Below are positions 2,271 to 59,623 of a stretch of 64,000 bases of DNA, piece after piece (within the stretch, counting starts at the first letter, position 1; each line of letters starts with the position of its first letter). A program made the translations under genes and the position numbers. The DNA lies in contig NC_092008.1 of NCBI RefSeq assembly GCF_044704955.1, positions 2,418,001 through 2,482,000 of the forward strand. The letters are read 5' to 3'. The notes below the pieces were generated by a model. It was given only the letters and a program-made list of their open reading frames with translations. It was not told the origin of the DNA and made no database searches. The stretch is from Pristiophorus japonicus. Lineage: Eukaryota.

Positions 2271-2343
2271 ATGCCGGCTTGCTCCCGAGGGACCGTCCTG
2301 GTGGCGATGGTGACTGTCGTGGCCGCGGTGGAGGGCTGGAGCG
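2271..2343 (+). CDS. WB-like #1 exon 1, signal peptide MPACSRGTVLVAMVTVVAAVEGWS
   Basis: ATG at 2271, hydrophobic core, 73 nt (phase 1), donor GTAAGT at 2344; joins in frame to 16620 (G+AC = Asp). Confidence 0.8.
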
Positions 2344-5300
2344 GTAAGTGGCTTCATTAACCCTCGCTCGCATCAACCTTCTGTCCCACTGCTGATCCGG
2401 GGGCTGGAGGGGGTTACAGAGATAGGGAGGGGTGTAGGGGCTGGAGGGGGTTACAGAGATAGGGAGGGGTGTAGGGGCTGGAGGAGGTTACAGAGATAGG
2501 GAGGGGTGTAGAGGCTGGATGGGGTTACAGAGATAGGGAGGCATGTAGGGGCTGGAGGAGGTTACAGAGATAGGGAGGGGTGTAGGGGATGGAGGGGGTT
2601 ACAGAGATAGGGAGGGGTGTAGGGGATGGAGGGGGTTACAGAGATCGGGAGGGGTGTAAGTGTTGCAGGAGGTTACAGAGATAGGGAGGGGTGTAGTTGT
2701 CATGTATTGAACGATCAGTGTAACCCATGTATAATCTGACCTAAGTTGTACACCTTGAGAACATTGACCACTAGGTGGTGAACTTGTGGGAGACACTCCT
2801 AACCTGGACTTTCAGGTATAAAAGGGGAAGCTCCACCCACCTTCATCACTTGAGGTCTTGGTAATAAAGGTAACTGGTCACAGAGTGAGATTCTCTCAAG
2901 TATGGGCCTCGTGTGCATTTATACTGCATAGTAAGGACATATCACTGGCGATGAGAAACTGGGATTTAAACCATGCGAGCAGGGCCACTAGCAGCACAGA
3001 AGAGAGGTACTGTGTTGGTGATGATTGGGACGACTTTATTGAGAACTACAGCAAAGTTTGGTCACTAAGGAATGGTTGGGACAGGATTCGGCCGACAAAC
3101 GCAGGGCCCATCTCCTGACGGTTTGTGGATCCAGGACGTACTCCCTGATGAAGGACCTTCTAGCGCCAGAGAAGCCGGCGGACAAGACGTTCGAAGAGCT
3201 CAGTAAGTTGATCGGAGAACAGTTTAAACCGGCGAGCAGCATGCACATGGTGAGACACCGGTTTTACACTCACCGGCAGTGAGAAGGGCAAAGCGTTCCA
3301 GACTTCGTGGCAGACCTCCGGCGACTGGCGAGCCTATGTAAGTTCCCAGATACATGCAGAGCGGAGATGCTGCGAGACTTTTTTATTGAGGGCATCGGGC
3401 ACGCTGGGGTTTTCAGGAAACTGATTGAGACCAAAGATTTGACCTTGGGAGCGGCGGCTCTGATAGCCCAGACATTTATCTCGGGGGAGGAAGAGACCAG
3501 AATGATGTATGACAAAAATCTTGGCTCAAATGCGGCAAACGACCAGGGAGTCAACATTGTTAACGCGGAACACAGCTCTCCAGGCAGACAAGGGCAATCG
3601 GACATGCCCCAGCATGTAGTCGAACCCAAAGGGGGAATTCAACAGAGACAATGGCTAGCTGAACGGCAATTCATGCCATTGCAAGGGACAATGCGGCCTG
3701 TAATGGGGCCATCAACACCTGTCAATGGTGCGCTTAAGGACAGTTACAGAGACAGTCAGAGACGATCGACTGGTAATGGACCTTTGTTTCCAACAATGGG
3801 GCCTCTAGCTCATGCTGGAGGTGTGGAGGCAAACACCCAGCGAGAGCTTGCAGGTATCAGCAATATACCTGCAGAAACTGCAACGTCAGCGGTCACTTGG
3901 TGCATATGTGCAGGAAGCCTGCAGCCAGGTTGATGTACGAGGAGGACGGGCCCAATGTAAGCCCTACGAGGCCAAATGGACACTGGGGGAAATCGCTGGA
4001 AGCTGAAGTTCAGCGAGTTCATGTGGAGCACGTATACAGTTCATACACCAGGACGCCACCGATAATGATGAAAGTGCTCCTCAATGGCATCCCAGTATTA
4101 ATGGAGCTAGACACGGGGGCCAGCAAGTCCCTGATGAGTATCAAACAGTTCGACAAGTTGTGGCCGTCCAAGGCCAGGAGGCCAAAATTATTGCCGATTG
4201 ACGCACAGCTGCGGACATGCACAAAGGAGATCATTCCGGTGCTAGGCAGCACCACGGTAGTCTTGACCCACAAAGATTCGGAGAACAGGTTGCCATTCTG
4301 GATTGTCCCAGGGGACGGTCCCGCACTACTGGGGAGGAGTTGGCTTGCTGTCATGAACTGGAAATGGGGCGATGTCAATGCAATTTCTTCTGTGGAGCGA
4401 GTATCATGCTCACAGGTTCTGGACAAATTTGACTCATTATTTCAACCCGGCATCGGCACTTTCATGGGGACCAAGGTAGTGATTCACATAAACCCGGACG
4501 CCAGGCCAGTACGCCACAAGGCCAGAGCGGTGCCATACGTGAAGCGGGAAAAGATAGAAGGCGAATTGGACCGCCTGCTGAGGGAAGGCATCATCTCGCC
4601 AGTCGAATTCAGTGACTGGGCGAGCCCGATCGTGCCGGTGCTCAAGGCGGATGGGTCGGTCAGGATATGTGGCGATTACAAGGCCACCATCAATAGTGTG
4701 TCACTCCAAGACCAGTACCCGCTACCGAGAGCGGAGGACCTCTTTGCGACGCTATCCGGTGGCAAACTTTTTTCAAAATTGGACCTGACCTCAGCTTACA
4801 TGACCCAGGAGCTGGCGAGTGAGTCGAAGAAGCTGACCACCATCACGACACACAAGGGGTTGTTTGAGTACAACAGATGTCCGTTCGGGATTCGCTCGGC
4901 CGCCGCGATCTTCCAGCGAAATATGGAAAGCCTCCTCAAGTCGATTCCAAGGACGGTGGTTTTTCAGGACGACATCCTCATTACGGGTTACGATACTGAA
5001 GAACACCTCCACAACCTGGAGGAGGTGCTACGCAGACTGGACCGGGTTGGGCTGCGACTGAAAAAGGCGAAGTGCGTCTTCCTAGCTCCCAAGGTAGAAT
5101 TCCTGGGGATGAGGGTAGCAGCAGACGGGATCAGACCTACTGCGTCCAAAACGGAAGCGATCCAGAGACCACCCAGACCCCGTAACACAACGGAGCTGCG
5201 TTCGTTCCTGGGGCTCCTGAACTATTTTGGTAACTTTCTTCCCAAATTGAGCACGCTGCTAGAGCCGCTACATGTGCTCCTACGCAAAGGTCGCGATTGG

Positions 5301-8300
5301 GTCTGGGGGGACAGCCAGGAAAGGGCTTTTGATAGAGCACGTAATTTGTTATGTTCCAACAATCTGTTAACGTTATATGACCCATGTAAGAAAATTGTGT
5401 TAACGTGCGATACGTCGTCCTATGGGGTCGGGTGTGTGTTACAGCATGTGAATGCCAATGGTCAGTTACAGCCGGTAGCTTATGCCTCCAGAAGTCTGTC
5501 CCAGGCAGAAAGGGGCTACGGGATGGTAGAAAAGGAGGCGCTCGCATGTGGATATGCAGTAAAAAAAATGCACCAGTATCTGTTTGGCAGGAAATTTGAG
5601 TTGGAGACAGATCACAAACCTCTAACGTCCCTTTTGGCCGACAACAAGACCATAAATGCGAATGCATCGGCCCACATACAGAGGTGGACACTTACGTTAG
5701 CCGCCTATGACTATGAGTCGAGGAGGCGGGAGCTCGGAGCAGCGCGAGTCCGGGGTCGGCGAGAGGCCTATAAAGGCCAGCGGGAGCTCGGAGCAGTCAG
5801 TCGAGGAGGCGGGAGCTCGGAGCAGCGCGAGTCCGGGGTCGGCGAGAGGCCTATAAAGGCCAGTGGGAGCTCGGAGCAGTCAGTCGAGGAGGCGGGAGCT
5901 CGGAGCAGCGCGAGTCCGGGGTCGGCGAGAGGCCTATAAAGGCCAGCGGGAGTCGAGCAGTTCGAGCAGTCAGTCGAGGAGGCGGGAGCTCGGAGCAGCG
6001 CGAGTCCGGGGTCGGTGAGAGGCGTACCGGTGCAGCTACAGGGAGAAGGCAAAAAAACAAAGGTGACGTCACAGCCTAGGGGGTAAGTGATTGGCTGGTG
6101 ATTGGTGAGTAGTTTTTCTTTTTCTTCTTATATTGGTCAGTAACTTTTAACATTGTTATTACCAGTTTAAGTGTATCTAAGGGTTAAGACATGGCAGGAG
6201 AGCTCGGTCGGGTGTTATGCTCCTCCTGTACCATGTGGGAACTCAGGGACGCTTCCGGTGTCCCTGACGACTATGTGTGCGGGAAGTGTATCCGCCTCCA
6301 GCTCCTGACGGTCCGCGTTACGGAATTGGAGCTGAAGGTGGATTCACTCTGGAGCATCCACGATGCTGAGAATGACGTGAGTATCACGTGTAGTGAGTTG
6401 GTCTTACCGCAGGGAAAGGGTCCACAGCCAGATAGGGAATGGAAGACCAGCAGGAAGAGTAGAGCAAGGAAGGTAGTGCAGGGGTCCCCTGCGGTCATCC
6501 CCCTGCAAAACAGATACACCGCTTTGGGTACTGTTGAGGGGAATGACTCATCAGGGGAGGGCAGCAGCAGCCAAGTTCATGGCACTGTGGCTGGCTCTGC
6601 TGCACAGGAGGGCAAGAAAAAGAGTGGGAGAGCGATAGTGATAGGGGATTCAATTGTGAGGGGAATAGATAGGCGTTTCTGCGGCCGCAACCGAGACTCC
6701 AGGATGGTATGTTGCCTCCCTGGTGCAAGGGTCAAGGATGTCTCGGAGCGGGTGCAGGACATTCTGAAATGGGAGGGAGAACAGCCAGTTGTCGTGGTGC
6801 ACATTGGTACCAACGACATAGGCAAAAAAAGGGATGAGGTCCTACGAAACGAATTTAAGGAGCTAGGAGCTAAATTAAAAAGTAGGACCTCAAAAGTAGT
6901 AATCTCGGGATTGCTACCAGTGCCACGTGATAGTCAGAGTAGGAATCGCAGGATAGCGCAGATGAATACGTGGCTTGAGCAGTGGTGCAGCAGGGAGGGT
7001 TTCAAATTCCTGGGGCATTGGGACCGGTTCTGGGGGAGGTGGGACCAGTACAAACCGGACGGTCTGCACCTGGGCAGGACTGGAACCAATGTCCTCGGGG
7101 GAGTGTTTGCTAGTGCTGTTGGGGAGGATTTAAACTAATATGGCAGGGGGATGGGAACCAATGCAGGGAGACAGAGGGAAACAAAAAGGAGCCAAAAGCA
7201 AAAGACAGAAAGGAGATGAGGAAAAGTGTAGGGCAGAGAAACCCAAGGCAAAGAACAAAAAGGGCCACTGTACAGCAAAATTCTAAAAGGACAAAGGGTG
7301 TTAATAAAACAAGCCTGAAGGCTTTGTGTCTTAATGCAAGGAGTATCCACAATAAGGTGGATGAATTAATTGTGCAAATAGATGTTAACAAATATGATGT
7401 GATTGGGATTACGGAGACGTGGCTCCAGGATGATCAGGGCTGGGAACTCAACATTCAGGGGTATTCAACATTCAGGAAGGATAGAATAAAAGGAAAAGGA
7501 GGTGGGGTAGCATTGCTGGTTAAAGAGGAGATTAATGCAATAGTTAGGAAAGACATTAGCTTGGATGATGTGGAATCTATATGGGTAGAGCTGCAGAACA
7601 CCAAAGGGCAAAAAACGTTAGTAGGAGTTGTGTACAGACCTCCAAACAGTAATAGGGATGTTGGGGAGGGCATCAAACAGGAAATTAGGGGTGCATGCAA
7701 TAAAGGTGTAGCAGTTATAATGGGTGACTTTAATATGCACATAGATTGGGCTAGCCAAACTGGAAGCAATACGGTGGAGGAGGATTTCCTGGAGTGCATA
7801 AGGGATGGTTTTCTAGACCAATATGTTGAGGAACCAACTAGGGGGGAGGCCATCTTAGACTGGGTGTTGTGTAATGAGAGAGGATTAATTAGCAATCTCA
7901 TTGTGCGAGGCCCCTTGGGGAAGAGTGACCATAATATGGTGGAATTCTGCATTAGGATGGAGAATGAAACAGTAAATTCAGAGACCATGGTCCAGAACTT
8001 AAAGAAGGGTAACTTTGAAGGTATGAGGCGAGAATTGGCTAGGATAGATTGGCGAATGATACTTAGGGGGTTGACTGTGGATGGGCAATGGCAGACATTT
8101 AGAGACCGCATGGATGAAGTACAACAATTGTACATTCCTGTCTGGCGTAAAAATAAAAAGGGGAAGGTGGCTCAACCGTGGCTATCTAGGGAAATCAGGG
8201 ATAGTATTAAAGCCAAGGAAGTGGCATACAAATTGGCCAGAAATAGCAGCGAACCTGGGGACTGGGAGAAATTTAGAACTCAGCAGAGGAGGACAAAGGG

Positions 8301-11300
8301 TTTGATTAGGACAGGGAAAATGGAGTACGAGAAGAAGCTTGCAGGGAACATTAAGGCGGATTGCAAAAGTTTCTATAGGTATGTAAAGAGAAAAAGGTTG
8401 GTGAAGACAAACGTAGGTCCCCTGCAGTCAGAATCAGGGGAAGTCATAACGGGGAACAAAGAAATGGCGGATCAATTGAACAAGTACTTTGGTTCGGTAT
8501 TCACTAAGGAGGATACAAACAACCTTCCGGATATAAAAGGGGTCAGAGGGTCTAGTAAGGAAGAGGAACTGAGGGAAATCTTTATTAGTCGGGAAATTGT
8601 GTTGGGGAAATTGATGGGATTGAAGGCAGATAAATCCCCAGGGCCTGATGGCCTGCATCCTAGAGTACTTAAGGAGGTGGCCTTGGAAATAGCGGATGCA
8701 TTGACAGTCATTTTCCAACATTCCATTGACTCTGGATCAGTTCCTATGGAGTGGAGGGTAGCCAATGTAACCCCACTTTTTAAAAAAGGAGGGAGAGAGA
8801 AAACAGGGAATTATAGACCGGTCAGCCTGACCTCAGTAGTGGGTAAAATGATGGAATCAATTATTAAGGATGTCATAGCAGTGCATCTGGAAAATGGTGA
8901 CATGATAGGTCCAAGTCAGCATGGATTTGTGAAAGGGAAATCATGCTTGACAAATCTTCTGGAATTTTTTGAGGATGTTTCCAGTAAAGTGGACAAAGGA
9001 GAACCAGTTGATGTGGTATATTTGGACTTTCAGAAGGCTTTCGACAAGGTCCCACACAAGAGATTAATGTGCAAAGTTAAAGCACATGGGATTGGGGGTA
9101 GTGTGCTGACGTGGATTGAGAACTGGTTGTCAGACAGGAAGCAAAGAGTAGGAGTAAACGGGTACTTTTCAGAATGGCAGGCAGTGACTAGTGGAGTGCC
9201 GCAAGGTTCTGTGCTGGGGCCCCAGCTGTTTACATTGTACATTAATGATTTAGACGAGGGGATTAAATGCAGTATCTCCAAATTTGCGGATGATACTAAG
9301 TTGGGTGGCAGTGTGAGCTGCGAGGAGGATGCTATTAGGCTGCAGAGTGACTTGGATAGGTTAGGTGAGTGGGCAAATGCATGGCAGATGAAGTATAATG
9401 TGGATAAATGTGAGGTTATCCACTTTGGTGGTAAAAACAGAGAGACAGACTATTATCTGAATGGTGACAGATTAGGAAAAGGGAAGGTGCAACGAGACCT
9501 GGGTGTCATGGTACATCAGTCATTGAAGGTTGGCATGCAGGTACAGCAGGCGGTTAAGAAAGCAAATGGCATGTTGGCCTTCATAGCGAGGGGATTTGAA
9601 TACAGGGGCAGGGAGGTGTTGCTACAGTTGTACAGGGCCTTGGTGAGGCCACACCTGGAGTATTGTGTACAGTTTTGGTCTCCTAACTTGAGGAAGGACA
9701 TTCTTGCTATTGAGGGAGTGCAGCGAAGGTTCACCAGACTGATTCCCGGGATGGCGGGACTGACCTATCAAGAAAGATTGGATCAATTGGGCTTGTATTC
9801 ACTGGAGTTCAGAAGAATGAGAGGGGACCTCATAGAAACATATAAAATTCTGACGGGTTTAGACAGGTTAGATGCAGAAAGAATGTTCCCAATGTTGGGG
9901 AAGTCCAGAACCAGGGGTCACAGTCTGAGGATAAGGGGTAAGCCATTTAGGACCGAGATGAGGAGAAACTTCTTCACCCAGAGAGTGGTGAACCTGTGGA
10001 ATTCTCTACCACAGAAAGTAGTTGAGGCCAATTCACTAAATATATTCAAAAGGGAGTTAGATGAAGTCCTTACTACTCGGGGGATCAAGGGTTATGGCGA
10101 GAAAGCAGGAAGGGGGTACTGAAGTTTCATGTTCAGCCATGAACTCATTGAATGGCGGTGCAGGCTAGAAGGGCTGAATGGCCTGCTCCTGCACCTATTT
10201 TCTATGTTTCTATGTTTCTATGTTTACACAATTTGGCACAGACCGGGCACTGAAAACTGCGCCGATGCACTCAGCAGGCTCCCACTAGCCACCACTGAGG
10301 GGGCTACCGAGCATGCTGCTGAGATGGTCATAGCTGTTGAAGCTTTCGAAAGCGAAGGCTCACCTGTGACAGCCCGTCAGATTAACGTCTGGACAAATAG
10401 AGACCCGCTATTGTCTTTAGTTAAGAAATGTGTCCTGAATGGGGACTGGGCAGCCACGTACGGGGCATGCCCTGAGGAGTTTAAACCGTTTCATAGGCGC
10501 AAGGATGAACTCGCGATTCAGGCCGATTGCCTACTGTGGGGAAACCGAGTAGTCATGCCCCAGATGGGCAGAGAGGTGTTCATCAGAGAACTCCACAATG
10601 AGCACCCGGGCATTGTCATGATGAAGGCAATTGCCAGGTCACACGTTTGATGGCCAGGGATAGACGCTGATCTGGAACTTAGTGTTCGCAGGTGCAACAC
10701 GTGTGCCCAGCTGGGCAATGCGCCCAGGGAAGCCCCCCTTAGCCCCTGGCCATGGCCCACCAAGCCTTGGTCACGCATCCATGTGGACTACGCAGGTCCT
10801 TTCATGGGAAAAATGTTTTTGGTTGTAGTAGACGCCTACTCCAAATGGATCGAGTGTGACATTTTAAATTCAAGTACATCCTTTGCCACGGTAGAAAGTC
10901 TACGGGCAATGTTCGCCGCCCACGGTCTACCGGACATCTTGGTCAGCGACAATGGCCCGTGCTTCACAAGCACTGAATTCCAGGACTTCATGGCAGGCAA
11001 TGGAATTAACCATGTCAGAACGGCACCGTTCAAGCCGGCCTCAAATGGCCAGGCAGCACGAGCAGTGCAGATAATCAAACAGGGGATGCTCAGAATCCAA
11101 GGGGGTTCTCTACAAAGTCGCTTATCACGCCTCCTGTTGGCCAATAGATCCCGACCACACTCACTCACAGGGGTTCCACCCGCAGAGCTACTAATGAAAA
11201 GGACGCTCAAAACCAGGTTATCCCTTATACACCCTACTATGAAAGAAATTGTTGAGAGCAGGAATCAGTCACAATGTGACTATCATGACAGGAATGCGAG

Positions 11301-14300
11301 GGCGCGATGTATTGATGTCAATGACCCTGTTTTTGTCCTTAATTACGCTGCAGGGCCCAAATGGCTTGCAGGCACTGTGGTTGCCAAAGAGGGAAATAGG
11401 ATTCTGGTAGTTAAACTTATCAATGGACAAATCTGCCGCAAACATGTGGATCAAACTAAAAGGAGGTTCAGCAACCCCACAGAAGAAGCAGAGGAAGAAC
11501 ACGGTGTAGAGTTCACTCCACCACAGGTGACCAAACACCGGAACCAGAGGGAGGAGGGCCCAGTCACTGTGGGCAGTCCGGACAGGCCTGAGGCACCGCA
11601 AACAGCAGACACTCAGGCCAGCGCCCAACAACCGGAGCCCCAACTCAGGCGCTCTACAAGAGAGCGTAAACCACCAGAGAGACTCAACCTGTGATCCCAA
11701 TAAGACTTTGGGGGGGAGGTGATGTCATGTATTCAACTATCATTGTAACCCATGAAGAAGCTGACCTAAGTTATACACCTTGAGAACACTGACCACAGGG
11801 GGCGAACTTGTGGGAGACACTCCTAACCTGGACTTTCCGGTATAAAAGGGGAAGCTCCACCCACCTTCATCACTTGAGGTCTTGGTAATAAAGATAACTG
11901 GTCACAGAGTGACCTTCTCTCAAGTATGGGCCTCGTGTGCATTTATACTGTATAGTAAGGACATATTAGTAGGGGCTGGAGGAGGTTACAGAGATAGGGA
12001 GGGGTGTCGGGGCTGGAGGAGGTTACAGAGATAGGGAGGGTGTAGGGGATGGAGGAGATTACAGAGATAGGGAGGGTGTAGGGGCTGGAGGAGGTTACAG
12101 AGATAGGGAGGGTGTAGGGGCTGGAGGAGGTTACAGAGATAGGGAGGGGTGTCGGGGCTGGAGGAGATTATAGAGATAGGGAGGGGTGTAGGGGCTGGAG
12201 GAGGTTACAGAGATAGGGAGGGGTGTAGGGCTGGAGGAGGTTACAGAGATAGGGAGGGGTGTAGGGGCTGGAGGAGGTTACAGAGATAGGGAGGGGTGTC
12301 GGGGCTGGAGGAGGTTACAGAGATAGGGAGGGTGTAGCGGATGAAGGAGATTACAGAGATAGGGAGGGTGTAGGGGCTGGAGGAGGTTACAGAGATAGGG
12401 AGGGGTGTAGGGGCTGGAGGAGGTTACAGAGATAGGGAGGGGTGTAGAGGCTGGAGGGGGTTACAGAGATAGGGAGGGGTGTAGAGGCTGGAGGGGGTTA
12501 CAGAGATACGGAGGGGTGTAGGGGCTGGAGGAGGTTACAGAGATAGGGAGGGGTGTAGAGGCTGGAGGAGGTTACAGAGATAGGAAGGGGTGTAGAGGCT
12601 GGAGGAGGTTACAGAGATAGGGAGGGGTGTAGGGGCTGGAGGGATTTGTAAACAAGGATGAGAATTTTGAAATCGAGGCGTTGCTGGACCGGGAGCCAAT
12701 GTAGGTCAGCGATGATGGGTGAGCGGGACTCGGTGCGAGTTAGGACACGGGTCAGCGAGCACAAGGGGTGATGGGTGAGCGGGACTCGGTGCGAGTTAGG
12801 ACATGGGGCAGTGAGCACAGTGGGTGATGGGTGAGCGGGACTCGGTGCGAGTTAGGACACGGGGCAGTGAGCACAGCGGGTGATGGGTGAGTGGGGCTCG
12901 GTGCGAGTTAGGACACGGGGCAGTGAGCACAGGGGGTGATGGGTGAGTGGGACTCGGTGCGAGTTAGGACACGGGGCAGTGAGCACAGGGGGTGATGGGT
13001 GAGCGGGACTCGGTGCGAGTTAGGACACGGGTCAGCAAGCACAGGGGGTGATGGGTGAGTGGGACTGGGTGCGAGTTAGGACACAGGGTCAGTGAGCACA
13101 GGGGGTGATGGGTGAGCGGGACTCGGTGTGAGTTAGGACACGGGGTCAGTGAGCACAGGGGGTGATGGGTGAGCGGGACTCGGTGCGAGTTAGGACACGG
13201 GGGGCAGTCGAGTTTTGGATCACCTCTAGTTTACGTCGGGTAGAATGTGGGAGGCCGGCCAGGAGCGCAGCACATTGGAATAGTCAAGTCTGGAGGTAAC
13301 GGGGGCACGGATGAGGGCTTCAGCAGCGGATGAGCTGAGGCAGGGGCGGAGACGGGCGATGTTACGGAGGGGGAAACAGGCGGGTTTAGTTCTGCTGCGG
13401 GAGATGTGGCCGGAAGCTCATTTCAGGGTCAAATATGACAGCGAGCTCGCGAACTGTCTGGTTCAGCCTCGGACAGGAGTTGGGGGACAGGGAGAGGTTC
13501 GGTGGCTGGGGCAACGCAGTTTGTGGTGACGTTGTACACCTCTCTCCGGGCATTAGGTGGTTTGAGTGTGGGACAATCCCAAGATAATCAGTTGGCCTGG
13601 GAGCGCCCCGAGAGGGGCCTGGGGTGGAAGGGGCGATAGAAAATAACCTGAAGACCAGCCGCAAAAACGTTCCCAATAAATAACGCTCACCACCACAACA
13701 TGCTCTGCAAAAAAAATGTAATTAAAAAACTGTTGTGTTTCGAATAACTCCACAAGACTGAGTACTGTGAGGTTAAACTGATGTGACCGTAGTCTCTTGA
13801 ATAAAACTCCAGAGCACCAAAGTAACACGGCAGACAACTTTTTATACTCCCTTGCGCGAGGTGTGCAAGTGACCCTTGGTCCTCCAACAGTTGCGCCCTC
13901 TGGTGGCACATCTTACACAGTTACACCGTTTACATACGTAACAGAAACAGTCACCCTTACCGGGAAGTCGATATTATTCAACTCAACTGTAGCCGCTACA
14001 GCTTTCACGGGCGGTCCCAGCATGGCGCTCTACGGCACTCTACGGCACCAAGAGGCGGCGACGAGCCGAAAGTACAGCCCAATTGATTGGCTTCGGTCTT
14101 CCCGACATTGTACGATCAATAAGACGCATCACGTTCCCGTTCTGTCAGCTTGACTCGATCGGAGCAATGCCACGGGAGGTCCACGCGAGGGGTTGAAATC
14201 AGACTGCTCAGTTCCAGCGATCCTGAACCCCGTGATCCGGCCGGCTGGGACTGGGGTGTTCTTTTGTAGTCATCGGCGTCGTCATCACCATCAGAGGCAG

Positions 14301-17300
14301 TGGACTTGCTTCCACTCTAGTGGCACTGGTTTGCCGCACGCTCCTTCCGCTGCCTGCGCTGGGTTTCTGCACGCTCTCGGCGACGAGACTCGAGGCGCTC
14401 AGCGCCCTCCCGGATGCACTTCCTCCACTTAGGGCGGACTGGTCTTTGGGCCCAGGGACTCCCAGGTGTCGGTGGGGATGTTGCACTTTATCAGGGAGGT
14501 TTTGAGGGTGGTCCCTTGTAACGTTTCCTCTGCCCACCTTTGGCTCGCTTGCCCGTGAAGGAGTTCCGAGTAGAGCGCTTCCTTTGGGGAGTCTCGTGTC
14601 TGGGGGCATGAGGACAATGTGGCCCTGCCCAGCGGAGCTGGTCGAGTGTGGTCAGTGCTTCGATGCTGGGGATGTTGGGCCTGGTCGAGGACGCTAACGT
14701 TGGTGTGTCTGTTTGCAGTTGCGTTCCTGTGACTGCAAAAGCTTCTACAGAAATGTGAAGAGAAAAAGATTAGTGAAGACAAATGTAGGTCCCTTGCAGT
14801 CAGATTCAGGTGAATTTATAATGGGGAACAAAGAAATGGCAGAACAATTGAACAAATACTTTGGTTCTGTCTTCACGAAGGAAGACACAAATAACTTGCC
14901 GGAAATACTAGGGGACCGAGGGTCTAGTGAGAAGGAGGAACTGAAGGAAATCCTTATTAATCAGGAAATGATGTTCGGGAAATTGATGGAATTGAAGGCC
15001 GATAAATCCCCAGGGCCTGATAGTCTGCATCCCAGAGTACTTAAGGAAGTGGCCCTAGAAATAGTGGATGTATTGGTGATCATTTTCCAACAGTCTATCG
15101 ACTCTGGATCAGTCCCTATGGACTGGAGGGTAGCTAATGTAACAACACTTTTTAAAAAGGGAGGGAGAGAGAAAGCGGGTAATTATAGACCGGTTAGCCT
15201 GACATCAGTAGTGGGGAAAATGTTGGAATCAATTATTAAAGATGCAATAGCAGCGCATTTGGAAAGCAGTGACAGGATCGGTCCAAGTCAGCATAGATTT
15301 GTGAAAGGGAAATCATGCTTGACAAATCTTCTGGAATTTTTTGAGGATGTAACTGGTAGAGTGGACAAGGGAGAACCAGTGGATGTGGTGTATTTGGACT
15401 TTCAAAAGGCTTTTGACAAGGTCCCACACAAGAGATTGGTGTGCAAAATCAAAGCACATGGTATTGGGGGTAATGTACTGACGTGGATAGAGAACTGGTT
15501 GGCAGACAGGAAGCAGAGAGTCGGGATAAACGGGTCCTTTTCAGAATGGCAGGCAGTGACTAGTGGAGTGCCGCAGGGCTCAGTGCTGGGACCCCAGCTA
15601 TTTACAATATACATTAATGATTTAGATGAAGGAATTGAATGTAATATCTCCAAGTTTGCAGATGACACTAAGCTGGGTGGCGGTGTGAGCTGTGAGGAGG
15701 ATGCTAAGAGGCTGCAGGGTGACTTGGACAGGTTAGGTGAGTGGGCAAATGCATGGCACATGCAGTATAATGTAGATAAATGTGAGGTTATCCAGTTTGG
15801 TGGCAAAAACAGGAAGGCAGAATATTATCTGAACGGTGACAGATTAGGAAAAGGGGAGGTGCAACGAGACTTGGGTGTCAGGGTACATCAGTCATTGAAA
15901 GTTGGCATGCAGGTACAGCAGGCGGTGAAGAAGGCAAATGGCATGTTGGCCTTCATAGCGGGAGGATTTGAGTATAGGAGCAGGGAGGTCTTACTGCAGT
16001 TGTACAGGGCCTTGGTGAGACCACACCTTGAATATTGTGTTCAGTTTTGGTCTCCTAATCTGAGGAAGGACGTTCTTGCTATTGAGGGAGTGCAGCGAAG
16101 GTTCACCAGACTGATTCCCGGGATGGCAGGACTGACATATGAAGAAAGACTGGATCGACTGGGCTTGTATTCACTGGGATTTAGAAGAATGAGAGGGGAC
16201 CTCATAGAAACATATAAAATTCTGACGGGATTGGACAGGTTAGATGCAGGAAGAATGTTCCCGATGTTGGGGAAGTCCAGAACCAGGGGTCACAGTCTAA
16301 GGATAAGGGGTAGGTCATTTAGGACCGAGATGAGGAGAAACTTCTTCACTCAGAGAATTGAGAACCTGTGGAATTCTCTACCGCAGAGAGTTGTTGAGGC
16401 CAGTTCGTTGGATATATTCAAGAGGGAGTTAGATGTGGCCCTTACGGCTGAAGGGATCAAGGGGTATGGAGAGAAAGCAGGAAAGGGGTACTGAGGGAAT
16501 GATCAGCCATGATCATATTGAATGGTGGTGCAGGCTCGAAGGGCCGAATGGCCTACTCCTGCACCTACTTTCTATGTTTCTATATTACTATGATTCCTCT
16601 GGGTATTTTTCTCTTGCAGACATGCACCTGTTCCACGTGCAGTGCGCGTGCGTTTACCACGACCGTCGGGTGGTCGAGATATCTTGGCAAGACGCCTTCG
16701 ACGGCGCCACTGTCCTGTACTATGACGTCGCCAACAAGACGTTTGTCGCCACCCGGCCGATCGCCCAGGGGGAAGTGGCGAGGCGTAACTCGGACCCAAG
16801 CTACCTCGCGTCGATACCACGCCGTATCGAGGCGCTCTGCGATAAAATTAAACACGCCGCCACCACGAGCAACACCACGCTGCCAAAAATGGGTAAGGTC
16901 GTTTATAAACACCGCAACCGTGGGCAGTAAATTCCACTCGGACAGTTCCCAAGATGTTAATTTTAGCCTCGGAACATTTCCAGCGACGGGAACAGCAAAG
17001 TTCAGTTGTCGCACGTTGACACTGGAGTGCAATGCAAAGGGAAACCTTCCACGCGCGAGAACACGGGCACAACTGAATATCCCGTGCGATGGAGCTGGCT
17101 TTGTCAAAGAAAGACCCGCATTACGATAGCGCCTTGCACGACCACCGGACGTCCCAAAGCGCCTCACAGGCAATGGCGTGCTATCGGAGTGCGCTCACTG
17201 TTGTAATGTGGGGAACGCCAACCTGCGCACAGCAAGATCCCACACACACAGACGTGACAAATGACCCGGATCGTCTGTTGGTCGAGGGATAAGTATTGGC

Positions 17301-26464: not shown

Positions 26465-26465
26465 G
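26436..26465 (+). CDS. WB-like #1 last coding exon (AEGLTKSTA-stop)
   Basis: Acceptor ctcttccctttcag; TGA at 26462-26464 followed by donor gtaatg at 26466. Confidence 0.7.
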
Positions 26466-33239: not shown

Positions 33240-33857
33240 TCAGTTAACAGGAACCGAAACCCTCGTTCGTCAAGGTTAAAGGAGAGGTCGTGGTTCAACT
33301 AGTTGGGCAACTTTCCATTTTATCNNNNNNNNNNNNNNNNNNNNNNNNNNNNNNNNNNNNNNNNNNNNNNNNNNNNNNNNNNNNNNNNNNNNNNNNNNNN
33401 NNNNNNNNNNNNNNNNNNNNNNNNNNNNNNNNNNNNNNNNNNNNNNNNNNNNNNNNNNNNNNNNNNNNNNNNNNNNNNNNNNNNNNNNNNNNNNNNNNNN
33501 NNNNNNNNNNNNNNNNNNNNNNNNNNNNNNNNNNNNNNNNNNNNNNNNNNNNNNNNNNNNNNNNNNNNNNNNNNNNNNNNNNNNNNNNNNNNNNNNNNNN
33601 NNNNNNNNNNNNNNNNNNNNNNNNNNNNNNNNNNNNNNNNNNNNNNNNNNNNNNNNNNNNNNNNNNNNNNNNNNNNNNNNNNNNNNNNNNNNNNNNNNNN
33701 NNNNNNNNNNNNNNNNNNNNNNNNNNNNNNNNNNNNNNNNNNNNNNNNNNNNNNNNNNNNNNNNNNNNNNNNNNNNNNNAATTGTGTTCTGACACCAGGG
33801 TTGTGTTCCCTCCTGTTACAATCAGTGCGAGGAGGAAGTCGGGAGGAGGGTGAAGCG
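33240..33857 (+). promoter_or_regulatory. Putative WA-like promoter (duplicated at +3183): ETS-IRF composite GGAACCGAAA (33250-33259), kB-like GGCAACTTTCC, GAGGAAGT; partly N
   Basis: Motif matches upstream of the leader; 455 nt are N. Confidence 0.4.
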
Positions 33858-33939
33858 ATGAAGCTCGGTCCCATTGCCCCCAGCTGTATCTACACCTTCA
33901 TCCTCCTCACCCGCCCCGCGGGGCTTGGCTCAGCCATGC
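33858..33939 (+). CDS. WA-like leader exon copy 1 ([27 protein letters not shown])
   Basis: ATG at 33858, 82 nt (phase 1), donor gtgagt. Confidence 0.75.
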
Positions 33940-45900: not shown

Positions 45901-46550
45901 CCCCCCCCGTCCTACAATAAAGGCCAAGTGGAAGGGGAGAGTGTAGTGTTTGCAAGCACTCGAGTAATGACTCCACGAGGTAAGGGACTGCACTTGAACT
46001 GTTGTGACCTGAGTCCATTTCTTGCTGCTCCTGAATGAGGGTACAGTAAGCCGGGCTCCCTTTTAGAATTGGTTACCTGCGGTGTGCAGGTGACCTCTGG
46101 GTCTCCACCAGTTGCACCCTCTGGTGGTACAGGTATGGTGTATACAGTGTGAAGGTACACTCATTGGCCTTATGTAACTGTACATTGAGTGTACAGGGTA
46201 TACACGTACACAACAGAGAGGGTAGCAGTGGATCAGAGCGGAGCCCGAGCAGAGTTTGGGGTGTGACTTGTTCCTCGCGGAGGGAGCTGGGGACTGGGGC
46301 CAGTCGGCCTGTGATTCTCACCGCCCTGACCGAGCCTGCCGTTTGATTTGCAGAGCCCGACGTGCAGGACGACCCGGAGGGTGGAGACCAGCAGGACCCG
46401 GGCGGGCTGGCCGTGTTGGTGTGTGGACTCGTTGTGGGGTTACTCGGGACCATGGCTGGTCTGGGCCTGTGCTTCTGTTCCAGAGTGGTGGACCGGGAGT
46501 CTCAGATGCTGCAACTTAGGCCCCAAGCCTCGTCCTCAACTTCGGCCTGA
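33858..46550 (+). CDS. MHC W-category-like alpha chain gene (WA-like): leader 33858-33939 or 37041-37122, alpha1 40081-40356, alpha2 43733-44014, TM/cyt 46354-46550
   Basis: GT-AG phase-1 introns and a continuous open frame; beta2m-like alpha2 domain with a class II alpha-type TM. Confidence 0.88.
37041..37122 (+). CDS. WA-like leader exon copy 2 (same peptide)
   Basis: Copy of 33858-33939 offset by 3183 bp. Confidence 0.78.
37155..40012. repeat. 33-bp SINE-derived minisatellite, largest array (others 26648-27352, 28659-29725, 31460-32190, 33972-35372, 40437-41605, 47449-47620, 58517-59295)
   Basis: Unit gcactgtcggaggggcggtactgagggagcgcc; source of the long spurious ORFs. Confidence 0.95.
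40081..40356 (+). CDS. WA-like alpha1 domain exon ([15 protein letters not shown]...LVLHYDS...[12 protein letters not shown])
   Basis: Acceptor ctctttgtag, donor gtcagt, 276 nt; strands then amphipathic helix, no Cys, C-terminal sequon NDS at the usual MHC alpha1 position. Confidence 0.82.
43733..44014 (+). CDS. WA-like alpha2 Ig C1 exon, beta2-microglobulin-like
   Basis: Acceptor ctccttttcag, donor gtaaga, 282 nt; [54 protein letters not shown]. Confidence 0.93.
44175..45900. mobile_element. Cluster of nested CR1 3' fragments on both strands in WA intron 3
   Basis: ORFs 44418-45053 (-), 45134-45502 (+), 45584-45781 (-). Confidence 0.85.
45942..46215 (-). mobile_element. Solo LTR with 5-bp TSD GAGAG; related LTR at ~13700-13943
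   Basis: TG...CA termini, gagag on both flanks, shared ccaccagaggg core. Confidence 0.7.
46354..46550 (+). CDS. WA-like connecting peptide/TM/cytoplasmic exon
   Basis: Acceptor gatttgcag; acidic stalk, then [15 protein letters not shown] (GxxxGxxGxxxG as in class II alpha TM); TGA at 46548; AATAAA near 47957. Confidence 0.88.
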
Positions 46551-46661
46551 GAAACGGACCCCCCCCCCAAACTGTGACTTGGGGCAATAGTTGCTCACTG
46601 GCTGTGACCCCCCGCTCTCCCAGGACTTCGTGTGCCAAGTTCCTCTGCTTTACTCTGCATA

Positions 46662-47448
46662 CGAACATAAGAAATAGGAGCAGGAGTCGGCCATTCGGCC
46701 CCTCGAGCCTGCTCCGCCATTTAATACGACCATGGCTGATCCGATCATGGACTCAGCTCCACTTCCCTGCCCGCCCCCTTATCGGTTAAGAAACTGTCTA
46801 TCTCCGTCTTAAATATATTCAATGTCCCGGCTTCCACAGCTCTCTGAGGCAGCGAATTCCACAGATTTACAACCCTCTGAGAGAAGAAATTCCTCCCCAT
46901 TTCAGTTTTAAATGGGCGGCCCCTTATTCTAAGACCATGCCCCCTAGTTCTAGTCTCCCCCATCAGTGGGAACATCCTCTCTGCATCCACCTTGTCGAGC
47001 CCCCTCATAATCTTATACGTTTCGATAAGATCACCTCTCATTCTTCTGAATTCCAATGAGTAGAGGCCCAACCTACTCAACCTTTCCTCATAAGTCAACC
47101 CCCTCATCTCCGGAATCAACCGAGTGAACCTTCTCTGAACTGCCTCCAAAGCAAGTATATCCTTTCGTAAATACGGAGACCAAAACTGTACGCAGTACTC
47201 CAGGTGTGGCCTCACCAATACCCTGTATAACTGGAGCAAGACTTCCCTGCTTTTATACTCCATCCCCTTTGCAATAAAGGCCAAGATACCATTGGCCTTC
47301 CTGATCACTTGCTGAACCTGCATACTATTCTTTTGTGTTTCATGCACAAGTACCCCCAGGTCCCGCTGTACTGCGGCACTTTGCAATCTTTCTCCATTTA
47401 AATAATAACTTGCTCTTTGATTTTTTTTCTGCCAAAGTGCATGACCTC
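46662..47448 (-). mobile_element. CR1 3' fragment in the WA 3'UTR region
   Basis: ORF 46745-47386. Confidence 0.85.
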
Positions 47449-50400: not shown

Positions 50401-53400
50401 TGGACGTGCGCTCGAAGTGCTGTAACCCACAGGGCTACGGACCCAGAGCGGGAAAGTGGGATTAGGCCGGGATGGCTCTTGGTCGGCCGGCGCGAGGTGG
50501 ACACGATGGGCCGAATGGCCCCCTCCCGCGCTGTAAACTCCTGCGATTGAACTGGAGGGAGTGTTAGAAGAATAAACGAGGATGTAATTTCAAACAGAAC
50601 AAGTGACGAGACGGAAATCGAAAGGGTCTCGCGGGAAAATGCCAAACTTTATGCAGAAATGGTTCCGTTGCTTGGTAACACAGATACAATCCGATTGCAA
50701 TTACTTGGACACACATGAAAGACGGAAGTGTATGAGTTCGTTGAGTTCGTGAGCGTTTCCAGTCTGGGGGGCCGTTTGGTTAGAGAAAGGTATTGACCCA
50801 GGGCTGCTCTCCCCCCTCTCTCCCGCGACGGTCCGTGTCACGGACTCTCCGAACGATTCCCCCCCATGGTCGGTCGAGTCGGACCTCGGTCAGACGGAGC
50901 GAGAGAGAGAGAGAGAGCGAGATGGCGGAGGAGGTCCATTCGGGAGCGGCCGCCGCTTTGGGGAGTCTGACCTTTCACCTTTCGCCGGCCCCGGGAGGGC
51001 GAAAGGTGAAAGGTCAGACTCCCCGCGCTCTCCGAACGCCTCGCGGCGTTCCCTCCAACGATGTCGGCGGTCTCCGCTCCGAAACGTGGCCCCGGGGGGG
51101 GGGTCCTGAGGACAAGACGTAAGCAGCGGCCATCATACGGGTGGCACGCGTTATGTGTCGACACGTAGCAACAGTTTATAAACGCGGGATTACACGGGAT
51201 ATACGGCCCAGAAACAGGCCATTGGGCCCAACCAGTCCGTGCGGCGTTTATACCCCACTCGAGCCCCCTCCCGTCTTTCCCCATCTAAATCTATCGGCAT
51301 AACCCTCTATCCCCTTCTCCCCCGTGTGTTTATCCAGCCTCCCCTTAAATGCATCGACACTATTGGCCTCGACCCCTCCCTGTGGCAGCGAGTTCCACAT
51401 TCTCACCGCTCTCTGGGTAAAGAGGTTTCTCCTGAATTCCCCATTGGGTTTATCAGTGACTGTCTTATATCGATGGCCTCTGGTTACACCCTTCCCCACA
51501 AGTGGGAACACTCTCTCTGTATCCACTCATCAAAACCTTTCATCATTTTACAGATCTCTATTAGGTCACCCCTCAGCCTTTTTCATTCAAGAGAAAAGAG
51601 ACCCGGCCTGTTCATCCTTTCCTGATATGTATACCTCGCATTTCTGGTATCATCCTTGTAAATCTTCTCTGCACCTTCTCCAGTGCCTCTATATCCTTTT
51701 TATAATATGGTGACCAGAACTGTGCACGGTGCTCCAAGTGTGATCTAACCCAGGTATATGGAGACCAGAACTGTGCACAGTGCTCCCAGTGTGGTCTAAC
51801 ACAGGTATATGGAGATCAGAACTGTGCACGGTGCTCCAAGTGTGGTCTAACCCAGGTATATGGAGACCAGAACTGTGCACGGTGCTCCAAGTGTGGTCTA
51901 ATCCAGGTATATGGAGACCAGAACTGTGCACGGTGCTCCAAGTGTGGTCGAACCCAGGTATATGGAGACCAGAACTGTGCACGGTGCTCCAAGTGTGGTC
52001 TAATCCAGGTATATGGAGACCAGAACTGTGCACGGTGCTCCAAGTGTGGTCTAACACAGGTATATGGAGATCAGAACACCTCTCCCAATCTCATTAACCT
52101 CCTCCAGCCCCTACACCCCTCCCTATCGCTGTAACCTCCTCCAGCCCCTACACCCCTCCCTATCTCTGAAACCCCCTCCAGCCCCTACACCCCTCCCTAT
52201 CTCTGTAACCTCCTCCAGCCCGTACACACCTCCCTATCTCTGTAACCTCCTCCAGCCCCTACACCCCTCCCTATCTCTGTAACCCTCTCCAGCCCCTACA
52301 CCCCTCCCTATCTCTGTAACCTCCTCTAGCCCCTACACCACTCCCTATCTCTGAAACCACCTCCAGCCCCTACACCCCTCCCTATCTCTGTAACCTCCTC
52401 CAGCCCCTACACTCCTCCCTATCTCTGTAACCCCCTCCAGTCCCCTACACCCCTCCCTATCTCAGTAACTTCCTCCAGCCCCTACACCCCTCCCTATCTC
52501 TGTAACCTCCTCCAGCCCCTACACCCCTCCTTATCTCTGTAACCCCCTCCAGCCCCTACACCCCTCCCTATCTCTGTAACCTCCTCCAGCCCCTACACCC
52601 CTCCCTATCTCAGTAACCTCCTCCAGCCCCTACACCCCTCTCTATCGCTGTAACCTCCTCCAGCCCCTACACCCCTCCCTATCTCAGTAACCTCCTCCAG
52701 CCCCTACACTCCTCCCTATCTCTGTAACCTCCTCCAGCCCCTGCACCCCTCCCTATCTCAGTAACCACCTCCAGCCCCTACACCCCTCCCTATCTCTGTA
52801 ACCCCCTCCAGCCCCTACACCCCTCCCAATCTCAGTAACCTCCTCCAGCCCCGACACCCCTCCCTATCTCTGTAACCTCCTCCAGCCCCTACAACCCTCC
52901 CTATTTCTGAAACCTCCTCCAGCCCCTACACCCCTCCCTATCTCTGTAACCCCCTCCAGTCCCCTACACCCCTCCCTATCTCAGTAACTTCCTCCAGCCC
53001 CTACACCCCTCCCTATCTCTGTAACCTCCTCCAGCCCCTACACCCCTCCCTATCTCTGTAACCTCCTCCAGCCCCTACACCCATCCCTATTGCTGTAACC
53101 TCCTCCAGCCCCTACACTCCTCCCTATCGCTGTAACCTCCTCCAGCCCCTACACCCCTCCCTAGCTCTGTAACCTCCTCCAGCCCCTACACCCATCCCTA
53201 TCGCTGTAACCTCCTCCAGCCCCCTACACCCCTCCCTATCTCTGTTATCTCCTCCAGCCCCTACACCCCTCCCTCGCTCTTTAACCTCCTCCAGCCCTAC
53301 ACCCATCCCTATCGCTGTAAGCTCCTCCTGCCCCCTACACCTCTCCCTATCTCTGTTATCTCCTCCAGCCCCTACACCCCTCCCTATCTCTGTAACCTCC

Positions 53401-54424
53401 TCCAGCCCCTACACCCCTCCCTAGCTCTGTAACCTCCTCCAGCCCCTACACCCATCCCTATTGCTGTAACCTCCTCCAGCCCCTACACTCCTCCCTATCG
53501 CTGTAACCTCCTCCAGCCCCTACACCCCTCCCTAGCTCTGTAACCTCCTCCAGCCCCTACACCCATCCCTATCGCTGTAACCTCCTCCAGCCCCCTACAC
53601 CCCTCCCTATCTCTGTTATCTCCTCCAGCCCCTACACCCCTCCCTCGCTCTTTAACCTCCTCCAGCCCTACACCCATCCCTATCGCTGTAAGCTCCTCCT
53701 GCCCCCTACACCTCTCCCTATCTCTGTTATCTCCTCCAGCCCCTACACCCCTCCCTCGCTCTTTAACCTCCTCCAGCCCTACACCCATCCCTATCGCTGT
53801 AAGCTCCTCCTGCCCCCTACACCTCTCCCTATCTCTGTTATCTCCTCCAGCCCCTACACCCCTCCCTATCTCTGTAACCTCCTCCAGCCCCTACATCCCT
53901 CCCTATCTCTGAAACCTCCTCCAGCCCCTACACCCCTGCCTATCTCTGTAACCTCCTCCAGCCCCTACACCCCTCCCTATCTCTGTAATCTCCTCCAGCT
54001 CCTACACCCCTCCCTATCTCTGTAACCCCCTCCAGCCCCCTACATCCCTCCCTATCTCTGTAACCCCCTCCAGCCCCTACACCCCTCCCTATCTCTGTAA
54101 ACCCCTCCAGCCCCTACACCCCTTCCGATCGCTGTAACCTCCTCCAGCCCCTACACCCCTCCCTATCGCTGTAACCCCCTCCAGCCCCTACATCCCTTCC
54201 TATCTCTGTAACCTCCTCCAGCCCCTACACCCCTCCCTATCTCTATAACCCCCTCCAGCCCCTACACCCCTCCCTATCTCTGTAACCTCCTCCAGCCCCT
54301 ACACCTCTCCCTATCTCTGTAACCCTCTCCAGCCCCTATACCCCTCCCTATCTCTGTAACCTCCTCCAGCCCCTAGACCCTTCCCTATCTCTGTAATCTC
54401 CTCCAGCCCCTACACCCCTCAAAC

Positions 54425-55050: not shown

Positions 55051-55249
55051 AGCTCTACGATGATAAGGGAGTCGAGGGTTATGGGGAGCGGGTGGGGAAG
55101 TGGAGCTGAGTCTATGATCGGAGCAGCCCCGCGATCTTACTAAATGGCGGAGCAGGCTCGAGGGGCCGAATGGCCGACTCCTGCTCCTAGTTCTTAGGTT
55201 CTTATGTACAAACCTGCGAGCATATTCACAGGTGCATACACCACCATCT

Positions 55250-58180: not shown

Positions 58181-58190
58181 ATCACGTTAC

Positions 58191-59510
58191 CTGTCCGATC
58201 AAAGGTAGCTGCTCCGGCATGGAGCAGCTGGCTGATGAAGTCGAGATTTTCCCGGATGTCCTTCTCGATGTTCTGCAGGGCCTTCGGGTCCTTGTTGGTG
58301 CTGGCCACCGCGGCCTTCACGGAGGCGTGCTTCAGGACCAGCCGGCCCGTCGTGGTGTCGAACACAGTCAGCGTGTCGGCGTTGTAGGCCAGGCTCCACC
58401 CGCAACCGGTCATGTCCTTCTGGACAACGGCTGCTCGGTCACAGTCCAGGAGTTGTTGCACCACGTCTGGAGGGAGGGGGAGAGAGGGAGACAGCAGATG
58501 AGGCGATTGTACCAGCGCCTCCGACAGTGCGGGGCTCCCTCAGTACCGCCCCTCCGACAGTGCGGCGCTCCCTCAGTACCGCCCCTCCGACAGTGCGGGG
58601 CTCCCTCAGTACTGCCCCTCCGACAGTGCGGGGCTCCCTCAGTACCGCGCCTCCGACAGTGCGGCGCTCCTTCAGTACCGCCCCTCCGACAGTGCGGCAC
58701 TCCCTCAGTACCGCCCCTCCGACAGTGTGGCACTCCCTCAGTACCGCCCCTCCGACAGTGCGGGGCTCCCTCAGTACCGCCCCTCCGACAGTGCGGGGCT
58801 CCCTCAGCACCGCCCCTCCGACAGTGCGGCATTCCCTCAGTACCGCCCCTCCGACAGTGCGGCGCTCCCTCAGTACCGACCCTCCGACAGTGCGGGGCTC
58901 CCTCAGTACTGCCCCTCCGACAGTGCGGGGCTCCCTCAGTACTGCCCCTCCGACAGTGCGGCGCTCCCTCAGTACCGCCCCTCCGACAGTGCGGGGCTCC
59001 CTCAGCACTGCCCCTCCGACAGTGCGGGGCTCCCTCAGTACCGCCCCTCCGACAGTGCGGCGCTCCCTCAGTACCGCCCCTCCGACAGTGCGGCGCTCCC
59101 TCAGTACCGCCCCTCCGACAGTGCGGCGCTCCCTCAGTACCGCCCCTCCGACAGTGCGGCGCTCCCTCAGTACCGCCCCTCCGACAGTGCGGCACTCCCT
59201 CAGCCAGTGCGGCGCTCCCTCAGCACTGCCCCTCCGACAGTGCGGCGCTCCCTCAGTACCACCCCTCCGACAGTGCGGCGCTCCCTCAGCACTGCCCAGT
59301 GCCAGCGTAGACTTATACACTCAAATCCCTGGAGTGGGACTCGAACCCACAACCTCCTGACTCAGAGACGAGGGGGCTGCCCCATTGAGTCAGGGCTGTC
59401 GCCTGAGGCTATCTGGGAGTGTGTGTCGGGATTTACAATTCTCCTGGCGTGGGGCAGTAATCACCGTATGAATCGTCGGCACAAAAACAGACACCTTTAA
59501 TGCTTAAAGT

Positions 59511-59542
<32 letters not shown>

Positions 59543-59623
59543 GTGAATCTTACCCTGTGCTGAAATGCAACTCAGGCACAAGCTAAAGCAGACCATGTGG
59601 ATAAAGTCAGCGACGAGCAACAT
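58191..59623 (-). pseudogene. Second WB-like gene or fragment: leader 59623-59554 (MLLVADFIHMVCFSLCLSCISAQ) and beta1 58466-58191; no beta2 or TM exon found
   Basis: Leader 70 nt, phase 1, donor gtaaga; beta1 276 nt with acceptor ctccctccag and donor gtaacg; DVVQQLLDCD..WSLAYNADT..NKDP..TFDRT aligns with WB-like #1 beta1. Confidence 0.75.

Follow-up and report, generated by a model that had tools for sequence, protein, structure and literature searches.

A probable W-category major histocompatibility complex gene cluster in the Japanese sawshark, Pristiophorus japonicus

Introduction

To which category of molecules of the major histocompatibility complex (MHC) do genes belong that are organised like class II chains and carry residues of the class I type in their immunoglobulin (Ig) domains? 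The question is raised by a 64,000-nucleotide stretch of the genome of the Japanese sawshark, Pristiophorus japonicus (contig NC_092008.1, positions 2,418,001 to 2,482,000; this whole stretch is called the window below, and all coordinates are counted from its first letter), a GC-rich and repeat-packed region in which the small exons of three MHC-type genes account for about 3% of 57 kb of repeats. A candidate answer is the W-category, defined by Okamura et al. (2021; PNAS 118:e2108104118; PMC8713811), who described three WA/WB pairs in sharks. The category has been proposed as an intermediate between MHC class II and class I, and well-mapped W loci help to fix which genes pair, how old the lineages are and which residues are truly conserved. 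In public annotation, W genes still carry the names of class II or class I.

In the great white shark, the W genes form a cluster of three head-to-head pairs, WA_DS5L/WB_Nds5L, WA_DS10L/WB_DS1L and WA_Nds3L/WB_DS3L (PMC8713811); such pairs are a usual W arrangement rather than a condition of membership. Conventional class II molecules, in the same study, always have W37 in alpha2 and W61 in beta2 (PMC8713811). We find that the window is very probably part of the sawshark W-category cluster, in which gene 1 is an intact WB_Nds5L-lineage beta gene, gene 2 an intact and apparently transcribed alpha gene of the WA_DS10 lineage and gene 3 a two-exon remnant of the WB_DS3 type. The locus is thus a further species' copy of a known W locus, the family and its shark cluster having been published in 2021, and not a new kind of gene.

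Results

Two stop-to-stop open reading frames (ORFs) in the window contain a Pfam C1-set domain, at 20837-21223 (E 1e-13) and 43675-44160 (E 4e-16), and scans for splice sites, hydrophobicity and signal peptides gave exon borders for genes 1-3 that are all canonical AG/GT and all in phase 1. In homology searches, gene 1 was used exon by exon, its spliced model never being searched whole, and gene 2 was represented by the public model P0001. We also built a WB profile solely from the WB proteins of other elasmobranchs, without any sequence from the window, and ran it on the 1593 six-frame ORFs of at least 20 amino acids (aa). It recovered exactly the WB exons of the window (E 1.5e-33, 9e-31, 1.2e-17, 3.7e-10 and 1.8e-7), with a cross-match to the alpha2 Ig exon of gene 2 (E 2.4e-5), and the best ORF outside the three genes reached E 1.8; this recovery is far beyond chance. 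The two complete spliced MHC genes and the partial third that an initial annotation of the window had placed here are therefore borne out by the exon maps, the C1-set domains and the profile scan alike. Genes 1 and 2 both have the class II-type organisation of signal peptide, one membrane-distal domain, one Ig C1 domain and a connecting peptide, transmembrane (TM) segment and cytoplasmic tail, and each is predicted to encode a type I membrane protein in which half an MHC groove and one Ig C1 domain are followed by a TM helix with a glycine motif.

Gene 1 (2271-26464, plus strand), the WB_Nds5L beta chain, has seven GT-AG coding exons, 296 codons in all, spread over 24.2 kb. Exon 1 (2271-2343) supplies the ATG and a 24-residue signal peptide and ends at a phase-1 donor, CG/GTAAGT; in its length and its ...GWS end it equals that of the Heptranchias orthologue P0025. 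The beta1 groove half-domain is encoded by exon 2 (16620-16892, 273 nt), with 58-63% identity to beta1 of P0006 and P0022, and the beta2 Ig C1 domain by exon 3 (20895-21167), which has the class I alpha3-type motif P..DGTFQ.W, the C1-set match at E 1e-13 and 46-54% identity to orthologues. Exon 4 (22208-22321) holds the connecting peptide and TM segment (IGAVLGILGLSAAVV, with a GxxxG motif), is 70-72% identical to the orthologue TM and agrees with the published WB_Nds5L TM rows. Three cytoplasmic exons follow: exon 5 (24932-24961; (R)CKRSKIQST), whose position and phase are those of orthologue tails; exon 6 (25062-25160), Ser/Cys-rich (AKFTRRTGPCGSNPCQASVRSS...), found at E 1.8e-7 by the profile hidden Markov model (HMM) and up to 80% identical to P0022 by tblastn; and exon 7 (26436-26464), which encodes (A)EGLTKSTA and the TGA stop, a C-terminal motif kept among WB chains. 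A gap of N letters at 24648-24802 lies in intron 4, which separates the TM exon from exon 5, and the nearest exon starts 130 nt downstream of it. The order of exons across it (TM, then three phase-1 cytoplasmic exons) is that of every full-length orthologue, which supports, short of proof by continuous sequence, the reading of gene 1 as a single gene across the gap. No public sawshark model of gene 1 was found, even with P0006 as the homology query; a search with the gene 1 beta1 ORF gave no match within a length window of up to 289 aa, which leaves out the orthologues of about 296 aa.

Gene 2 (37041-46550, plus strand), the WA_DS10-like alpha chain, has four coding exons, 278 codons over 9.5 kb. 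A homology search with its alpha2 ORF found a 278-aa UniRef protein of P. japonicus, P0001, with 100% identity over the alpha2 domain, and all exon translations of gene 2 proved to be contiguous pieces of this protein, residue for residue, with split codons that fit: the leader (37041-37122) is its residues 1-27, the alpha1 groove half-domain (40081-40356) residues 29-119 and the beta2-microglobulin (beta2m)-like alpha2 Ig C1 domain (43733-44014; C1-set, E 4e-16) residues 121-213. The alpha1 exon agrees with the published WA_DS10 alpha1 rows, and the last exon (46354-46550) encodes the connecting peptide, the TM segment (GxxxGxxGxxxG), the cytoplasmic tail and a TGA stop. Gene 2 is thus already modelled publicly, under the class II misnomer 'HLA class II DQ alpha 1 chain-like'.

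Among sequencing runs recorded as RNA, none contained the gene 2 alpha2 exon. The exon is present in two small runs of unrecorded kind (X1 and X2; share 0.68-0.72), and when contigs were placed on 43600-47000, a 339-nt contig of run X1 mapped to 43761-44013 and then to 46353-46438 (253 + 86 letters), which is the predicted alpha2-to-TM splice, while the unique intron bins adjoining these two exons had zero depth. This contig looks like a transcript. It differs from the window by a T>C at 43829 (Val to Ala, in alpha2) and an A>C at 46385 (silent, in the TM exon), which fits a second allele or another individual.

Gene 3 (59623-58191, minus strand) consists of a leader exon (59623-59554) and a beta1 exon (58466-58191) only. 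The latter carries the WB_DS3 signature VVQQLLDCD..GC.W..AYN, agrees with the published WB_DS3 rows and is 53% identical to beta1 of P0007 from S. canicula. An Ig-skeleton regular expression, a hydrophobic scan, tblastn and a profile HMM on six-frame ORFs found no beta2, TM or tail exon for it anywhere in the window. Gene 3 is either a truncated remnant or a casualty of assembly.

The lineage of each gene was read from comparison of the window exons with the named rows of Datasets S1-S3 of Okamura et al. Alpha1, alpha2 and TM of gene 2 follow the published WA_DS10 rows; beta1 (DMHLFHVQCACVY...AFDGATVLYYD), beta2 and TM of gene 1 follow the WB_Nds5L rows; and beta1 of gene 3 (VVQQLLDCDRAAV...GCGWSLAYNA) follows the WB_DS3 rows. 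Two database proteins served as anchors: P0021 (Carcharodon carcharias) has the sequence given in the published rows for great white WB_Nds5L, and P0008 (Scyliorhinus torazame, from a contig of 159,043 bp) that of the published 'catshark 159K' WB_Nds5L row; in the extracellular domains, their identity to gene 1 is 38-54%. Domain by domain, gene 1 is 54% (beta1), 47% (beta2) and 54% (TM) identical to P0021; 63%, 49% and 72%, with 80% in the cytoplasmic part, to Heterodontus P0022; and 56% (beta1) and 54% (beta2) to Heptranchias P0025. Gene 2 alpha2 is 59% identical to that of Heptranchias P0002 and 55% to that of zebra shark P0003. At NCBI, these orthologues go by the names of class II beta-like, class I-like, hemochromatosis-like or uncharacterized proteins. 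The suggestion of a possibly divergent lineage is not upheld by these comparisons, in which the three genes fit published WB_Nds5L, WA_DS10-like and WB_DS3-like genes with their lineage signatures, at 45-63% identity to orthologues domain by domain, and the features once flagged as oddities (a surplus Cys in beta1, D37 changed to T, a lost disulfide in the second beta1 and a long Ser/Cys tail) are lineage-typical instead.

The residues diagnostic of the category lie mainly in the Ig domains. Alpha2 of gene 2 has Y8, has L37 instead of the Ig-core Trp (VNVTLSEN) and has W61, within a GEGWRF stretch that aligns to KDWSF of beta2m and so provides the equivalent of beta2m W60. Beta2 of gene 1 has P57 and G61, with no W61 (motif VVPQRDGTFQAW in exon 20895-21167). 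In the groove domains, beta1 of gene 1 keeps A32 and G35, with H6 and T37 in place of Q6 and D37, and beta1 of gene 3 keeps Q6 and A32, with A35 and T37 differing, as the published shark DS3 rows also do. The TM glycine motifs, GxxxGxxGxxxG in the alpha chain and GAVLG (GxxxG) in the beta chain, are as described for W and class II chains.

Searches of the PDB lead in the same direction. For the gene 2 alpha2 exon, beta2m (57.8 bits) ranked above DM alpha (51.6) and DR alpha (47.9), a ranking rather than a tree, and a WA_DS10 family profile matched free beta2m with 78 bits on its alpha2 part alone. The gene 1 beta2 exon found class I alpha3 and MR1 in the lead and no class II beta in the best 60 matches; with a WB family profile, beta1 and beta2 together aligned to class I alpha2 and alpha3 (E 1e-24 to 1e-34), and here too class II beta was missing from the best 60. 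Neither Pfam MHC_II_alpha nor MHC_II_beta matched the window exons or P0001. The assignment to a W-category locus, in which class II chain architecture is combined with Ig residues of the class I/beta2m type, is accordingly sustained by the diagnostic residues, the PDB rankings and the published WA/WB alignments.

For the groove half-domain of gene 1, an AlphaFold2 (AF2) model from a 22-row alignment (predicted local distance difference test, pLDDT, 87.9; predicted template-modelling score, pTM, 0.73) has four strands followed by two helices, and Foldseek matched it to class II beta1 with a query-normalised score (TMq) of 0.70 at probability 1.00 and to the class I alpha2 domain with a TMq of 0.62. 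The AF2 model of P0001 is poor (pLDDT 56.5, from a three-row alignment), its best Foldseek matches being DM alpha and DR alpha across both domains. In the beta1 helix, K and I correspond to H81 and N82 of class II beta, and A to Y171 of class I, so that binding of peptide ends in the classical manner is unlikely.

Several points speak against placing the locus in the W-category as we do. Alpha2 of gene 2 has V55 and I57 instead of L55 and F/Y57, conservative changes at positions where the orthologues P0002 and P0003 have L or I at 55 and F at 57. Beta1 of gene 1 is without D37 and Q6, as are the published Nds5L rows. The three groove exons taken alone have no Pfam match, and PDB searches with the beta1 profile or the alpha1 exon gave matches at chance level only, the class I-like alpha2 domains of ULBP3 and RAET1L at E of about 1. 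The kind of run X1 is unrecorded, and its spliced contig could in principle be a processed DNA copy. Heterodimer formation and surface expression, as proposed below, are carried over from literature on other species.

Discussion

By their automatic public names ('class II DQ alpha 1 chain-like', 'DQ beta chain-like'), these would be divergent alpha and beta genes of the conventional class II or a DM-like kind, which would accord with their chain architecture, exon sizes and TM glycine motifs, all class II-like, and with the second rank of DM alpha for the alpha2 exon in the PDB search. However, alpha2 has L37 and beta2 has G61 at the two positions where conventional class II always has Trp, beta2m and class I heavy chains score above class II in sequence searches, the two Pfam class II families find no match, and the exons agree with the published W rows, so that we regard this reading as most improbable. 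An origin outside the published shark WA/WB genes, as a new and divergent W lineage, could be argued from the per-domain identity to the nearest orthologues of just 41-63% and from V55 and I57 in alpha2, where the Heptranchias and zebra shark orthologues retain F57. Such divergence is nevertheless of the size that we would expect between shark orders for non-classical MHC genes, and each gene bears the marks of its lineage: for gene 1 the Nds5L signatures, with CxC in beta1 and the AKFT...NPC...GLTKSxA tail; for gene 2 those of DS10, TDDPSLP in alpha1 and EPxV...QL.VLVCGL in the connecting peptide and TM stretch; and for gene 3 the DS3 beta1 signature LDCD..GC.W..AYN. A new lineage is thus very unlikely. 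Alternatively, one could envision decaying pseudogenes, scattered among repeats and making no protein, since gene 3 has two exons only, tandem repeats take up about a third of the window and retroelements fill the introns. We consider this quite unlikely for the locus, because in genes 1 and 2 the exons are open, the splice sites are canonical and agree in phase, start and stop codons are present and residues are conserved throughout, and gene 2 has in addition a spliced contig and a public model.

Compared with the shark W genes WB_Nds5L, WA_DS10 and WB_DS3 (Okamura et al. 2021), the sawshark genes are alike in chain architecture, exon structure and TM glycine motifs, in Y8, L37 and W61 of alpha2 and P57 and G61 of beta2, in the lineage signatures of groove and tail, and in the clustering of several W genes. 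They differ in coming from a further order (Pristiophoriformes), in V55 and I57 of alpha2, in introns greatly enlarged by minisatellites and retroelements, in a WB_DS3L cut to leader and beta1, and in a WA_DS10L that has no head-to-head WB_DS1L in the sequence read. With conventional class II, including DM, they share a make-up of two chains, each with a groove half, an Ig C1 domain and a TM segment, as well as TM helices of the GxxxG type and the best structural matches; in contrast to class II, they are without alpha2 W37, beta2 W61 and the Pfam MHC_II_alpha and MHC_II_beta domains, and sequence searches with them favour beta2m and class I. Their likeness to class I and beta2m lies in an alpha2 that resembles beta2m (W61, L37, Y8) and a beta1-beta2 that resembles class I alpha2-alpha3 (P57, G61, best PDB matches). 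In class I, however, alpha1, alpha2 and alpha3 sit on one heavy chain and beta2m is separate and soluble, whereas here each of two genes encodes one half of the groove, and the beta2m-like domain is anchored in the membrane, being fused to a groove half and a TM segment.

Which chain partners which is a separate matter. The order in the window is WB_Nds5L (+), WA_DS10L (+), WB_DS3L (-), with the head of gene 3 facing the window end; on the published scheme, a WB_DS1L (-) would be expected between the first two. Because genes 1 and 2 come from different published pairs (WA_DS5L/WB_Nds5L and WA_DS10L/WB_DS1L, respectively), they are probably, by analogy with those pairs, not each other's partner. 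By the published pairing, the cognate partners, WA_DS5L for gene 1 and WB_DS1L for gene 2, are not among the genes read in the window: positions 1-2270 hold no candidate for a WA_DS5L leader on the minus strand, and the four kinds of scan used for gene 3 detected no WB_DS1L exon on either strand of the sequence read from 26.5 to 37 kb. A search of representative proteins with the beta1 profile returned nine, with no WB_DS1-type protein among them. In the great white shark, the Met-to-Met distance from WA_DS10L to WB_DS1L is 275 bp (PMC8713811), and at a like distance the first exon of a sawshark WB_DS1L would fall in a gap of 455 N at 36508-36962, which is intergenic and ends 78 nt upstream of the gene 2 ATG.

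It could be, instead, that in the sawshark genes 1 and 2 are partners, WB_DS1L having been lost and pairing differing from that in other sharks. The two intact genes do adjoin, with no exon of the WB_DS1L type between them on either strand of the sequence read. Yet they are not arranged head to head but follow each other on one strand at a distance of 10.6 kb; the site expected for the first WB_DS1L exon is precisely the N gap just named, within an interval that also contains further gapping and a duplicated block; and the spiny dogfish, a squalomorph relative, retains a WB_DS1-like gene. We therefore judge a partnership of genes 1 and 2 improbable. In a broader form of the same idea, the sawshark W cluster has been remodelled, WA_DS10L having lost WB_DS1L, WB_DS3L having been truncated and the alpha chain pairing with a non-cognate beta chain, for example the neighbouring WB_Nds5L. 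This, too, we hold to be unlikely; if true, it would be a natural partner swap within an ancient MHC category. That WB_DS1L may be lost and WB_DS3L cut short would matter only if a better assembly bears it out.

In salamanders, W chains mature and reach the cell surface only together (Okamura et al. 2021, PMC8713811). By analogy, each sawshark chain would pair with a W chain of the opposite type through its TM segment and groove half, and the pair would reach the cell surface as a non-classical heterodimer of low polymorphism, in which alpha2 W61 may take the place that W60 of beta2m has in class I, packed beneath the floor of the groove. Of the non-classical heterodimer advanced in the initial annotation, then, the presence of W-type alpha and beta chains stands, and the pairing of these two complete chains with one another, from different published pairs as they are, is doubtful.

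As the literature already contains the gene family, its shark lineages and the shark cluster, and public databases a model of gene 2, the locus is of modest interest, as a known kind of gene, and it leaves the W-category picture of 2021 unchanged. What it adds is a squalomorph shark of a further order, together with exact exon maps usable for cloning the chains.

Other features of the window

The cytoplasmic tails of the WB chains are themselves conserved. In a comparison of the tail of gene 1 (24932-26464) with those of P0006, P0009, P0016, P0007, P0008, P0021, P0022, P0025 and P0026, the Nds5L and DS3 chains were found to share a long tail with two Cys (..C..NPC..), a Ser/Asn-rich run and the C-terminus [DG][DG]LTK[STH]x[AV]; tails of the WA_DS10 type terminate in a Ser run and SA. 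The conserved WB tail may be a sorting, palmitoylation or phosphorylation signal. The word 'cytoplasmic' is absent from the supplementary files of Okamura et al. 2021 (PMC8713811), the main text of which was not searched. Public isoform models of the WB_Nds5L orthologues in Hemiscyllium, Rhincodon and Stegostoma (P0004, P0011 and P0020, respectively) are without the beta2 or the TM exon, which hints at alternative splicing to Ig-less or soluble forms.

The window has three N gaps, and no reading frame spans any of them. Besides that in intron 4 of gene 1 and that before gene 2, there is an intergenic one at 33325-33779, also of 455 N, which lies in the first copy of a 2.3-kb block that is doubled (31800-34100 and 34983-37283; offset 3183 nt, 97-100% identical). 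Both copies of the block contain a gap of the same length, 455 N, as well as the gene 2 leader exon, letter for letter, the additional one being at 33858-33939 (plus strand), and arrays of a 33-bp minisatellite flank both copies. The doubling reflects either tandem duplication in recent times or faulty assembly within the 33-bp minisatellite. As the gap at 36508-36962 ends so close to the gene 2 ATG, the promoter of gene 2 is unread. Promoter boxes of the SXY type amounted, before genes 1 and 3, to CCAAT alone, at 2247 (24 nt upstream of the gene 1 ATG) and at 59662 (39 nt upstream of the gene 3 ATG), too weak to use, and no clear RFX X-box was seen there.

Minisatellite families with units of 33, 37, 43, 51, 56 and 68 bp, in both orientations, occupy about 21.8 kb (34%) of the window, as in the arrays at 18100-19298, 37173-40013 (86 copies) and 52076-54420; intron 1 of gene 2 is almost wholly one such array. 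Translation of the 33-bp arrays yields artefactual ORFs, the longest of 1017 aa. Within intron 1 of gene 1 lies, at 3307-11694, the pol region of a long terminal repeat (LTR) retrotransposon, with reverse transcriptase (RT)/RNase H at 3897-5936 and integrase at 10783-11691, interrupted by an apparently full-length long interspersed nuclear element (LINE) with an open ORF1 (GDSL esterase, 6191-7135) and an ORF2 (endonuclease-RT, 7216-10119).

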